64,000 bases of DNA from Macrostomum lignano (GCA_002269645.1 NIVC01003444.1:1-64000); one strand, 5' to 3'. Shown: positions 10,801 to 43,800, counted from the first letter of the stretch. Numbers and translations are program-made. The notes: a model not told the origin generated them from the sequence alone.

Positions 10801-13800
10801 CCTTCTACATACATTTGTGGATCACAAGTGACAATTCTTAACTTCTGCACTGTCTTTCGTTGAGCATGCGGTATGATTTTCGGAAGCTGATCGGTACTTT
10901 AAAGAGTTTTTTATCCCACTATCTCGCAAATTATTTTATCTTTCCCAGCTGTACAAACCTGACAGTCAACTGGCAGTCGGCAGTCCTGCTGATTGCACGG
11001 CTGCTGGTCCGTGTCGAGGCGGCCGCTCTCGTCAGGCGCACAGTTCCTCGTGTCGTTGACGCACAAGCGAACGCAGATGCGGCTGCGTCGTCGCGTTCCT
11101 GTGCCGCACGGCGCGCTGCAGCCGGAGAAGTCCGACCATTCCGACCAGCTGGGAGGCGGGATCTCCGAGCTCATCTGACCGGGCAGGCACACTCGCTGGT
11201 GGGTGTAGAAGCTGCAGTAGCAAACGCCGCAGCCAGTGTCCGACGGCATGGTCTCTCCGGGCGACACCAGGTTGCCGAATCTGTCTACGCAGCCCGGACA
11301 GCGCTGCGCGTTGCACGGCTCCGAGTCGACAGCGGAACCAACGCAGGCCCTGCCCGAACCGCGGCGTTGCGTCGCAATCGATCTGGTGCGCGTCCGGCTA
11401 CCGCCATCACAGGGCCGGCTGCAGGGACCCCAGTCCGACCAGGGGCCCCAGCTGCAGTCGCAGTTCGCGGTGGGCGCACACGTTGCAATACCATTCAGGC
11501 AGCGGGCCTGGGAGCAGGGGCCGCAGCGCATTGCCGTGAGGTCGCACGTGCATTGATCAGGCTTGACGCACACGCCGGTTGATTCATCGAAGACCAATCC
11601 GGAGTCGCAGAAGCAACCCGTGCTGCAGGTAGTCACATCTGTGCAGGTCTCATTTGTCACGTGGCCGCACGTGTAAGGACACGAAGTGCTGCTGCATTGT
11701 CGGACAACCTTGCCACCCGAGCAAGCTGCCGAGGTCGTGGTGGAACCGCACGGATGCACATTGCATAGGGCGCTCGAAGTGCTGGCGTCGTCCTTCAGGC
11801 AAGCTCCAGAAGATTTGCGGGAACGCGTTTTGATGCCTCCATTACAGGACTGGGAGCACTCGGACCACGCAGACCACTGACTCCAAATGCAAGGACAGTC
11901 ATGAGTGTTGCAAAGTTCTGAATCCTGAAAAAGGTGAATAAAGTATAATGCAAACACAATACGCTCTTATTAGGAAACTAAAACACTTTAAACAAAGTAA
12001 CAAAACCACAGCTTTACCGTAAACTCATTTGCACTGCAAGAAGCACCTCCAGGTTTTGCAGGAGACGCTACAGTGCGATTCCGAAAACGTAGTCCAGATC
12101 CACAGCTGGCTGAACAAGCACTCCATGGCTGCCATTGACTCCATTGACAGTTCTGACTGCAGTTCGATATAGCACAACGAAGTGCGCCATTATCGCAATT
12201 GCAGTGACCACAAGAAAAAAGCACGCTAACACCAGACTCTAAAATATCACCGTCGCTGACTTTCTCAGAAGGCGAAGTCAATCCCTCCGATCCATCCAGC
12301 TCAACCCAAACGTCAGAAGGATGCACACCGGTCTGTTGCACAACTTCACCAGCTGAGAACTGACACTCGCAGTCGCCACGAGATAGACACGGAGGAGGCG
12401 TAGCTACAAAACGAAAAAAATAAAGTAAAAACAATCAAAAAACCCTCAAACCACACTATGAAAAATTGCGAACACATACTTGGCTCAACAATTATGCAGG
12501 TTGCAGTAGCCGTCGCCACAACGCTTGGCGTAGTCGTTGCCGAAGTTGTTGACACTGTCGTACTACTAGAATTGGAGTAGTAGTGGTGTTCGCTGTTGTT
12601 GTTGTTGTGCTGGGCGTTGTTGTTGTCGGCGTAGTTGTAGTTGTGCTCGGTGTCGTGGTAGTTGATGTTGTTGTTGTGCTCGTTGTGCTTCTCGGTGTTG
12701 TTGTCAGCTTTGTGAAGCAGCCTAGCATGCTGACTTGAATCGGGATCCTGTTACCGCCCTCGTTTTTGAAATTAAAAACCAGAGCGATTCGATAAGCTTC
12801 CAAGCCCAATCCACCAACAGAGGCGCACGAGATGAAGTCGAACATGCAGGTGGCTACTTCAGCGGCACCGACAGCCAGTTTGACTGAAGTGAATGGAGAC
12901 ACCGCGTCTGTTGCATACTTTAGCTCCATTGACGTAATGAATCCTGGACTTGTCGTTGAAATCGATATTAGTCCGATGATCGAGTTACTAAGATCGTCTC
13001 CGCTGACGTTGAAATCGAACTGAATGCTATCCGTTGCTGTCGACGGTGTTGCCACACGGTTTATATTCAGTCCTGTGCTAGTCGGACGCAGCAGGTCGTA
13101 CTCGGACGTCGGAATCAGTCCAACGCCCTGAGTGGAGGCGCTCACCGTGATGTCGCTCACACTTATTATGCTGCTGTCGGCCATGAGATTTGTGTCAAGA
13201 CAACGAGTGAAGCTTGTAGTCGACTTGCTCTTCACGCCTTCTGTAGTGGTAGACGTGCTAGATGTCGTCGTTGTCGTTGTCGGCGTAGTCGTGGTCGACG
13301 TCGTCGTCGGAGTTGTTGTAGTAGTAGGCGTTGTCGTAGTAGTGGTAGGCGTTGTCGTAGTAGTCGTCGGCGTTGTCGTAGTAGTCGTCGGCGTTGTCGT
13401 AGTAGTGGTAGGCGTTGTCGTAGTAGTCGTAGGCGTTGTTGTTGTTGTGGTAGGCGTTGTCGTAGTAGTCGTAGGCGTTGTTGTTGTTGTGGTGGTGGTT
13501 TGTGTCGTCTTTTGTGGGAAGCAGCCATATATTCCGATCTGTATGTCAACAGAATTCCGATCGGTCACTGAATTGTAGAAAATCTCAAATCGCATCACCG
13601 TCGAGTTGATGGTCGAAGGCGTCGGCGGGATGCAGGCAAGCAGATTTGACTTGCACGCGGTGAGGTTCGCGCCAGAGAAGAAGTAAGTGTCCCAGGTGAC
13701 TTGCGTGTACGTCTGCTTATTGTACAACCGCACAGCCTGAATGTCAGGAGTGTTGAAAGCGAGCTGGATCCGACCGACAATGGTGGCTTCTGGACTGCCT

Positions 13801-40800: not shown

Positions 40801-43800
40801 CAACTCAGAGGTGGCGTAACCGCCAAGCTGGGTTCCGTTGAGGATGCGCATTGCTGATAACGGAATCACGGTCTCGTCAGCCAGACCATCAAAATCTATG
40901 CAAATTCCAGGTTGAGTAGTTGTTGCCATCGTCGTTTTAGTTGTAGTCGTTTGACAGTCCTTTTCGTCAGTTTGGTCCTTGAAAATTTATTGGACAGTGG
41001 GGTAGTAGCAAATTCGTAATATCTAATGAGGCCTCTAGGTTATAGTTTATAGGAATATTTCGTGTTTAAATTTTGTCATCATTACCTGGCAGTCTTGTTT
41101 GCCATCGCATATCTGGGTGACATTAATGCATTGGCATTTGTCGCAAAGAACCGTATCTTTTTCCATGCAGACACATTCTAAAAATGAATTGGGTTATTGT
41201 GTTATGATCAAGCTCAGATCAAGCTGACAATAATCTGCTTCACTCACCGCATCCGTACTCGTCGCTGCCGTCACCGCAGTCGTCGTGTCCGTCGCATCGT
41301 TTCGTACGCGGCAGACACTTGCCGTTGTTGTTTTGCGTTGAAGAACAGGTGAATTCTGTTGTTGTGTTGCACTCTGAGTCGGTATGTTAGTAATGATAGA
41401 CGGGTGATATATTTTCTAATATGAATACAGCATTTTATAAAGCAACGCATCGGCAGGGATCTTACTGGTGCAGTTGGCTTCGTCGGACCGATCGGGTATG
41501 CCGCAGTCGTAGGTGCCGTCGCACAGCTTGTCTTTGGGCAGGCATTTGCCGGATATGTTGCACTGGAACTCGGCCGGGTTGCAACCTCCTGGACAGGTGA
41601 TTGAACTTTCTGTGCTATGATACCATGATCCGTTATGAACGAGCTTATTTGATGGTCATCAATCTAGGACACTTGGTGGCCATCTCCGGAAATTTATAGG
41701 TCAACCTCTCCACATCTACTTATAATAAATATTTTAGTAAACAGTCTTTGAACTCACCGCAGAACAGCTCATCGGAGCCGTCAGTGCACTGAGGAATTCC
41801 ATCGCATTTTTGAGACATTGCAATGCACTGCCTGTTTGTGATGCACGGGAACGACGATGGCGAACAGGTTGTGTCTGAAAGTGATTTTTAATAATTGGTT
41901 TAAAGCTTTCTTTTTTCAAGTGGCAACACTATTTGGCGTTCATGAGCAGCCATTCTGACTTAGGTGTTGTGCGATTCAAGCTTCTAAAGTTCAGACTCAG
42001 AGTGTCTGGTGCTGGCGCCCCTAGTGCTGGCGCCCCTGGTGCTGGCGCCCCTGGTGCTGGCGCCCCTGGTGCTAGAGCCCCTGGTGCTGGCGCCCCTGGT
42101 GCTGGCGCCCCTGGTGCTGGCGCCCCTGGTGCTGGCGCCCCTGGTGCTGGCGCCCCTGGTGCTGGCGCCCCTGGTGCTGGCGCCCCTGGTGCTGGCGCCC
42201 CTGGTGCTGGCGCCCCTGGTGCTGGCGCCCCTGGTGCTGGCGCCCCTGGTGCCATAACTCGCCATATTAACTGTTGCTAATAATCTCAGGCCTTCGTAAA
42301 ACTAACCGCAGTTTTTCTCGTCCTCCCCTTGGAGACAGTCCACGGTGCCGTCGCAGAATCTATTGTAGTCGATGCACATGCCAGTCCCGCTGCAGGCGTA
42401 CTGCTGCTGGCTGCACGGCGGCCTGGTTGGATGGCACACCGAGCTGTCAGTGGTGCAGTTCAGGCGGCCCTCGCTCTGGCAGTTGCACACTGTGCAGTTG
42501 GCAACGTCGTTGATCACCGAACCACTCGGGTACTCCTTGCCATTGTGATAGCAGGGGCAGTCGCGGCTCGGTATGCACTCGTCTCCGTGTTCAACGAACC
42601 CATCTGGACATTCGCAGCCTTCGATGCACTGCCCCGTGGTGCAGTGGGTCGCCGGCTCCTGGCCGATGTTTCTGCAGGTCTTCTTGCACGGCGGAATGCA
42701 GGTTTTGTAGACTCGACCGCCGGGACACATCACCGCTAAATTTTTTAAAGGTTTTGTTATGAATTGCTTACGAGCTAATTAATAAATCCAAGAATTCATT
42801 CACAGATAAGAATCAAAGGTTCACAGAATCACGGATTCACGTGTTTACAGGTTCACAGAATCACAGAATCACAGAATCACAAAATCACAGATTCACAAAA
42901 TCACAGATTCACAGAATCACAGATTCACAGAATCACAGATTCACAGAATCACAGATTCACAGAATCACAGAATCACAGAATCCCAGATTCACAGAATCCC
43001 AGATTCACAGAATCACAGAATCACATAATCCCAGATTCACAGAAACACAGATTCACAAAATCACAGATTCACAGAATCACAGATTCACAGAATCACAGAT
43101 TCACAAAATCACAGATTCACAGAATCACAGATTCACAGAATCACAGATTCACAGAATCACAGATTCACAGAAGCACAGATTCACAGAATCACAGATTCAC
43201 AGAATCACAGATTCACAGAATCACAGAATCACATAATCCCAGATTCACAGAATCACAGATTCACAGAATCACAGAATCACATAATCCCAGATTCACAGAA
43301 TCACAGATTCACAGAATCACAGATTCACAGAATCACAGATTCACAGAATCACAGATTCACAGAATCACAGATTCACAGAATCCCAGATTTACAGAATCAC
43401 AGATTCACAGAATCACAGATTCACAGAATCACAGATTCACTGAATCACAGATTCACAGAATTACAGATTCACAGAATCACAGAATCACATAATCCCAGAT
43501 TCACATAATCCCAGATTCACTGAATCACTCACGGCACTGGTCCTGGTAGCGCCAGTGAACTGACACGCCGTTTTCGGCGCAGGCAGACGCGAAGGATGCC
43601 AGCACGGTGCACACGCACTGGCAGTCGCCCCCAGTGTCGCAGCCGCAGGCGTCGTACATGCAGTTCTCATAGTAGTTCTCAACCACGTCCTGCTCAAGCA
43701 CCTGCTGGCAGGCGGAGAATGCTCCTTTCTTGTCCTTGATGGCGCCGCACACGGATTCTGCGTAGTCCCGCCTCCGCCTGTTGACGCTGCACATCTCGAT

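Follow-up and report, generated by a model that had tools for sequence, protein, structure and literature searches.

The region described here is a stretch of Macrostomum lignano DNA of 64,000 nt (GCA_002269645.1 NIVC01003444.1:1-64000), and the whole of this stretch is called the window. A gene for a giant secreted mucin-type glycoprotein of a macrostomid flatworm lies on its minus strand, and positions 12480-40977 are the central tandem-repeat exon of this gene. No intron-like sequence is seen over the whole length of the exon; its reading frame, as deposited, is broken at many points.

The central exon and its repeat array

As shown in Table 1, the exon is bounded by an AG acceptor and a GT donor, both of which fit the consensus. 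A preliminary description of this DNA had placed the exon limits at 40977 and 12480 and the edges of the neighboring exons at 41086 and 12403, and the splice sites were found at these positions. The peptide joined over 41086/40977 forms a complete LDL-receptor class A (LDLa) domain (Pfam score of 26.6 bits, with the gathering score at 24.1, covering positions 3-37 of 37), which indicates that the 5' junction of the giant exon is independently supported. Of the other 26 exons, of 92-966 nt, given in the preliminary description, the 92-nt exon is present at 41177-41086. The flanking introns are very short, with lengths of 76 nt (12404-12479) and 108 nt (40978-41085). The 19 units adjoin directly across the 28,498 nt, and neither the units nor the borders between them contain intron-like sequence, as the preliminary description had also concluded.

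The units are arranged head to tail and show 97.4-100% identity to the reference unit, several of them being 100% identical. No stop interrupts the 497 codons of the majority-consensus unit, which encodes, in this order, module A (171 amino acids, 4 Cys), an 84-residue tract rich in proline, threonine and serine (PTS), module B (174 amino acids, 4 Cys) and a 44-residue PTS tract. Threonine makes up 83% of the 84-residue tract, which consists of a 21-bp (TTTTTTP) minisatellite, and 68% of the 44-residue tract; the array as a whole holds 38 PTS tracts. The units differ from one another by PTS-length variants (indels of 21 bp, 33 bp and 3 bp) in a non-periodic order. The composition profile suggested a higher-order periodicity of 6 kb, which was rejected because 2-kb windows alias with the 1,491-bp period.

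The giant exon starts in phase 0, and the frame of the donor lies 28,497 = 3 × 9,499 nt downstream; the acceptor and donor frames are therefore the same overall, a coincidence with a chance of one in three. The coding had been described as uninterrupted, which does not hold for the sequence as assembled. Alignment of the units revealed 20 indels that switch the coding frame, their lengths not being divisible by three. With the acceptor as the starting point and phase 0 as the frame, 345 codons precede the first stop. Stops occur in all three minus-strand frames (205-319 each), and the ORF (open reading frame) listing gives 12 separate ORFs for the region. The three longest open stretches comprise 2,461, 1,724 and 1,352 codons, and no continuous ORF runs from acceptor to donor, the longest stretch covering 2,461 of the ~9,499 codons. 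From composition, 2,461 open codons have a log10 P of about −45, which indicates that the sequence is certainly coding in origin. A non-coding satellite is ruled out by this open stretch together with the matching peptides described below.

The frame-shifting events recur at a small number of sites, as listed in Table 1. A single C is deleted at the site CGT[C]CGAG in eight units, giving a ratio of deleted to intact of 8:11 (deleted version GATTCCGACGTCGAGT, counterpart GATTCCGACGTCCGAGT), and at the site GTG[C]CGCT in five units, giving 5:14 (versions GTCGGTGCCGCTGAA and GTCGGTGCGCTGAA). The −1, −5, +5 and +2 events sit in the central Thr tract, where the +2 event at ~34215 is a CGA insertion without its C. 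A further one-base offset is found at the join of the last unit with the unique tail, where the frame switches at ~12575 within ACTCC^AATTC and the Thr frame meets a TAA at 12494-12492.

Table 1. Positions of the giant exon, its repeat units, the frame-shifting events and the flanking coding features in the window.
Feature	Position	Strand	Remark
Giant central exon, 28,498 nt	12480..40977	-	AG acceptor and GT donor
Acceptor AG of giant exon	40979-40978	-	exon start 40977
Donor GT of giant exon	12479-12478	-	exon end 12480
Acceptor AG of downstream exon	12405-12404	-	exon start 12403
Upstream 92-nt exon	41086..41177	-	first part of the LDLa module that the giant exon completes
Unique 5' lead, 42 nt	40936..40977	-	end of LDLa module
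Unique 3' tail, ~100 nt	12480..12590	-	one base off the Thr frame of the last unit
First in-frame stop	39940..39942	-	due to 1-bp deletion between 39985 and 39984
Array, 19 units of ~1,491 bp (497 codons)	12555..40935	-	self-BLAST and MAFFT of units
Unit starts, plus-strand numbering	12555, 14043, 15534, 17025, 18515, 20000, 21491, 22982, 24494, 25983, 27477, 28965, 30475, 31964, 33457, 34968, 36420, 37914, 39426		
Unit 1, two single-C deletions not shared with other units	between 39985/39984 and 39656/39655	-	
Units 4-5	34215..35823	-	-5 at ~35823; single-C deletion 35521/35520; +2 at ~34215
Units 6-11, central block of recurrent single-C deletions	24806..32517	-	
CGT[C]CGAG deletions in central block	32517/6, 31027/6, 29517/6, 28029/8, 26535/4, 25046/5	-	
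GTG[C]CGCT deletions in central block	30788/7, 29278/7, 27790/89, 26296/5, 24807/6	-	
PTS-tract events in central block	~28331 (-1), ~26837 (+5)	-	
Unit 16, CGT[C]CGAG single-C deletion	17577..17578	-	
Upstream exons	41243..54494	-	EGF/EMI-like piece, at least 3 VWD, 2 C8, at least 2 TIL, at least 4 LDLa
Downstream exons	7660..12403	-	at least 5 TSP1, TIL, VWC-like piece, Cys-rich C-terminal piece
VWD	51675-51974, 48166-48951, 44505-44831, 43528-44238	-	above Pfam gathering scores
C8	50070-50444, 43528-44238	-	above Pfam gathering scores
TIL	45498-45995, 42305-42778	-	above Pfam gathering scores

The repeat modules and their relatives in Macrostomum lignano

Modules A and B are paralogous (25% identity, E = 1e-9), and their four cysteines align; they are taken to be disulphide-bonded and rich in beta structure. 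The whole unit matched no Pfam family even at E ≤ 1, and a search of the module profile against PDB sequences gave nothing meaningful. Two AlphaFold (AF2) models of the modules are all-beta with low confidence (predicted local distance difference test of 55-57 and predicted template-modelling score of 0.57-0.60), and the best Foldseek matches, which are to CBM32, F5/8 type C, MAM and DOC domains, are weak, with E values of 1e-3 or above and template-modelling scores of 0.35-0.48. These models give a hint that the module may belong to the galactose-binding-like jelly-roll class.

Relatives were sought by an exhaustive HMMER search with the A/B profile over 1.84 billion (1.84e9) representative proteins. 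The sole match was the UniRef entry A0A1I8GJ02 (P0003) of Macrostomum lignano, with E = 5e-28. Fourteen upstream exons of the window gene align with this protein in the same order at 46-84% identity, and none of them is frame-shifted relative to it; the protein also matches module B of every unit at 52% and has Thr-rich linkers too. Its C-terminus, at residues ~1530-1680, consists of D/N/Y/H-rich text, which corresponds to the +2 frame of the Thr tract with a brief return to TTTTTPS, and this indicates that the public gene model is itself frame-shifted in the repeats. In a word-indexed protein search, no match was obtained for module A, two distant matches only for the TSP1 exon, and none for the VWD-C8 exon, for which P0003 itself was not recovered. 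A search of contigs for the locus encoding P0003 found none.

Peptides of this family are contained in the M. lignano proteome of Wunderer et al. (2019). Dataset S2 of PMC6410801 lists a 2,625-residue fragment, to which the pipeline gave the label MUC5B/hemolectin-like, with 16 peptides, and the transcript RNA815_290.1 with peptides that include the module A type. The counterpart was detected, by 16 peptides plus 5 peptides, in the proteome that identified the glue proteins, and the paper itself does not discuss it (PMC6410801); no paper was found in the literature on transcript RNA815_290. These peptides indicate that the family is translated, and translated in frame, in M. lignano. Three of the 16 counterpart peptides and one peptide core, the latter in 19 copies, occur verbatim in the translation of the window, and the others differ. 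Judged from these sequence differences, the window gene may be a divergent paralogue, or it may come from another Macrostomum-like species. The M. lignano entries, A0A1I8GJ02 and those in Dataset S2, are fragments.

Origin of the frame breaks

The explanation that we favor, with moderate confidence, is that the frame breaks are mostly uncorrected long-read consensus errors, in which case the giant exon is probably biologically continuous despite the broken deposited sequence. All seven single-base sites are deletions, with no 1-bp insertions, and the base lost from the coding strand is C at each of them (P ~2e-4, as estimated from composition). CC runs hold five of the seven sites (P ~1e-3), and the motif TCCGA is common to three. 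When the Thr minisatellite and the array ends are set aside, four indel sites but zero substitutions are found among the 19 units, which is the reverse of the normal mutation spectrum and favors error. The array contains no nonsense substitutions. The ~6.5 kb of unique flanking coding sequence has 0 frameshifts, whereas the array has 0.7 of them per kb (P = 0.01, counted by cells), a difference that fits polishing which succeeds where the sequence is unique but breaks down in multi-copy repeats. The M. lignano gene model A0A1I8GJ02 also loses the frame in its own Thr tract (DNNHDVDYDN…). The breaks would then mostly reflect the difficulty of polishing repeats.

Several observations weigh against this explanation. 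The recurrent deletions fill contiguous blocks of units (units 6-11 and 7-11), which is the pattern expected from the tandem duplication of a truly mutated unit, and the 100%-identical sequence context is intact in other units, which a context-driven error should also have struck. In addition, the excess of frameshifts over the flanks is not significant when independent sites are counted (P = 0.13), and the evidence of translation belongs to the M. lignano counterpart, of whose 16 peptides 3 are identical in the window. The same blocks and intact contexts are accounted for if the frameshifts are real and unequal crossing-over carried the mutated units through the array. The locus would then be a recently inactivated pseudogene (a gene, an allele or a homeologue), or it would yield a truncated N-terminal product of the VWD/LDLa region plus ~0.7 unit, in keeping with the stops in each frame and the first of them 345 codons past the acceptor. 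The loss of one copy could be tolerated, since Macrostomum lignano is reported to be a neopolyploid with redundant gene copies (PMC10733133). However, the ratio of indels to substitutions in the module-coding sequence, four sites to zero, is far from normal mutation spectra, one and the same base is lost in all the single-base events, mostly in CC runs, the ~6.5 kb of flanking exons are fully intact, and there are no nonsense substitutions anywhere. Real inactivation is regarded as the less probable explanation, and the remainder is assigned to mixtures of both.

The size of the array can be questioned separately, because an assembly artefact, by collapse or expansion, would mean that the true number of units differs and that 28.5 kb is not real, and this would be compatible with either error or real frameshifts. 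The units are 98-100% identical over 1.5 kb, several at 100%, so that the copy number needs reads longer than the array, and according to the flatworm adhesion literature, long reads are indispensable for assembling such repeats (PMC8621496). The PTS-length variants, being non-periodic, give the assembler some anchor points and speak against a simple synthetic concatenation, and we consider such an artefact possible but on the whole doubtful. Splicing at internal GT-AG sites, which would remove the frame-shifted parts or yield the length isoforms suggested in the preliminary description, is very improbable. Nothing in the sequence points to it, sibling units carry the same sequence as plain, continuous coding sequence, the consensus unit has no stop anywhere, and the M. 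lignano transcript RNA815_290.1 gives peptides of both module types in one 738-residue ORF. Consensus error remains the favored explanation of the breaks, and the joint interpretation, in which the locus is a single giant mucin-type repeat exon whose frame breaks are mostly long-read consensus errors, is likewise held with moderate confidence.

Gene architecture, comparable systems and meaning

The domains of the exons on both sides of the array are summarized in Table 1. At the start of the gene, Pfam gave EGF matches only, and EMI was not confirmed. The C-terminal region is occupied by TSP1 repeats, with a weak, sub-threshold VWC/VWF-like match at 8950-9231. The last Cys-rich piece (7660-7806) ends in …KCHCVEA followed by a stop; it had no Pfam match at E ≤ 1, and CTCK was not confirmed. 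With regard to the features of gel-forming mucins, N-terminal VWD-C8-TIL assemblies are present, and so is a PTS tandem-repeat domain in one large exon, with its frame broken as assembled.

Several other tandem repeats lie in the window. A 15-bp minisatellite CTGGTGCTGGCGCCC forms two arrays 19 kb apart, at 42006-42252 (~16 copies) and 61175-61511 (~22 copies), with 97-98% identity; an intron of the gene harbors one of them, and the other lies far upstream. A 28-bp unit GTCAGTTTTGGCGCCATCTATCCCAGAT likewise forms two arrays, at 56209-56885 and 58527-58812, 1.6 kb apart, which might represent either a dispersed family of minisatellites or the termini of a mobile element. A 22-bp unit array at 1384-4191 (2.8 kb, ~126 copies), with a 44/66-bp higher order and a strong C-over-G skew, lies downstream of the last exon of the gene. 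Long tetranucleotide microsatellites at 5849-6388, 46817-47285, 49237-50079 and 51104-51591, mostly in introns of the gene, comprise two (TGAT)n tracts, an 843-bp (TCTA)n tract and an (AGAC)n tract, and they give spurious long ORFs such as 49071-50177 (+) and 46487-47470 (-). A purine-rich GGGAGAGGAAG… array at 62777-64000, with a GC skew of +0.68, continues past the end of the window. A search of the whole window against Rfam found nothing.

Within the same genus, the closest system in design is Mlig-ap2, a surface-binding glue protein of M. lignano with 14,794 amino acids, which is an O-glycoprotein positive for peanut agglutinin (PNA) and whose knockdown by RNA interference abolishes adhesion (PMC6410801, PMC8621496). 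It consists of a vWD/TIL/C8/LDL N-terminus, 46 central repeats of ~11,000 amino acids in total, which is larger than the window array, and a TSP-1 C-terminus; its exon structure is not stated in these papers (PMC6410801, PMC8621496). The comparison drew on the text of SI Fig. S12 in the PNAS supplement. Both proteins share the domain order vWD/TIL/C8/LDL, repeats, TSP1/TIL, and both have Cys-bounded repeats with Thr-rich linkers in the center, of which Mlig-ap2 has dozens of ~220-255 amino acids. However, the N-terminal sequences are clearly different, and Mlig-ap2 has two successive homogeneous blocks (21 × 255 and 25 × 221 amino acids), whereas the window array alternates A and B in each unit. 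A profile-profile comparison of modules A/B with the Mlig-ap2 repeats (RP-1/RP-2) by hhalign gave a probability of 0.8% and E = 0.07, and thus no detectable homology. The window gene is rejected as an Mlig-ap2 orthologue, given that no homology of the repeats could be detected, and its best M. lignano match is a different protein. SCO-spondin combines an EMI/EGF-like start, three VWD domains with C8/TIL, an LDLa cluster, many TSP1 repeats and a Cys-rich C-terminus. In a comparison of layout only, this domain combination, with EGF matches alone at the start, is shared with the window gene, but SCO-spondin has none of the PTS/mucin array.

Among human genes, the largest internal exons are those of MUC16 (exon 3, >21,000 nt) and titin (>17,000 nt), and almost all of the exons that exceed 10 kb belong to mucin genes (PMC3467050). 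The window exon, with 28.5 kb, is longer than these, as had been claimed, and longer than the giant exons of MUC16, MUC4, MUC12 and MUC17, which reach at most ~21-22 kb. The parallel with MUC2 and MUC5B drawn in the preliminary description stands in part. As in MUC2, MUC5B and MUC5AC, an N-terminal VWD-C8-TIL region is combined with a huge, Thr-rich PTS exon of tandem repeats broken by Cys-containing modules. In contrast to MUC2/MUC5B, the interspersed modules are not CysD, an LDLa cluster precedes the repeats, and TSP1 repeats appear to take the place of the D4/VWC region at the C-terminus, which is the layout of Mlig-ap2 and SCO-spondin.

The splicing and export of such an mRNA had been called unusual, and known systems contradict this. 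The Chironomus BR1/BR2 pre-mRNA of 35-40 kb carries three introns close to its 5' end and one close to its 3' end, with a middle made of exon sequence only; in this classical model it is spliced co-transcriptionally in the normal way and exported as a giant messenger ribonucleoprotein (PMC2174289, PMC4602041). The window gene resembles BR1/BR2 as a secretory-protein gene whose pre-mRNA is almost all one tandem-repeat exon, the characteristic feature of the Balbiani ring genes, although the two encode unrelated protein families and flanking exons are far more numerous in the window gene. The spider AgSp1 gene has a coding sequence of 42,270 bp in two similar exons of ~21 kb, for which long reads and error correction were required to obtain an open frame (PMC6553539). 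AgSp1 and AgSp2 are likewise comparable as bioadhesive glycoproteins with exons of ~20 kb composed of ~40 iterated motifs, a spidroin feature, although they are of an unrelated sequence family and the spidroin genes have 1 intron against ~26 in the window gene. Giant repeat exons in genes of secretory and adhesive proteins are already well established, and the window exon is one more of them. The Balbiani ring genes already cover the splicing and export of giant mRNAs, and therefore the window exon does not change what is known of these processes.

The mechanism that we propose begins with unequal crossing-over or gene conversion, by which the array may have been built and kept homogeneous. 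Transcribed and retained as a single exon, it would encode ~9,500 of the ~12,000 amino acids of the protein. Thr/Pro tracts are of the kind that carries dense O-glycans, and VWD/C8/TIL are multimerisation modules; by analogy with Mlig-ap2, the product may be an O-glycosylated, disulphide-linked polymer for mucus or glue. A bolder proposal, which we regard as rather unlikely, is that the exon of ~9,500 codons is truly continuous and encodes a second Macrostomum "lectin-mucin", whose 38 discoidin/CBM32-like modules bind the O-glycans on the Thr tracts of neighboring molecules. If so, the protein would form a self-crosslinking mucus or glue distinct from Mlig-ap1/ap2, and it might be the PNA-positive secretion of the frontal glands or an unrecognized component of the adhesive footprint, from which the peptides of the M. 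lignano counterpart may have come. The exon, if continuous, would also rank among the longest intact coding exons on record for an animal.

The assembly and annotation of giant tandem-repeat exons in genes for secreted glycoproteins are difficult, and so the locus is useful as a test of assembly quality; an annotation at face value would give a pseudogene or fragmentary genes. The authors of the flatworm adhesion work stated that "solid genomes" are required for the study of such repeat regions (PMC8621496). For Macrostomum, the window offers an apparently complete array layout, of 19 units and 38 modules, for a mucin-like family that was known only from fragments and whose design is also that of Mlig-ap2, a protein of temporary adhesion.

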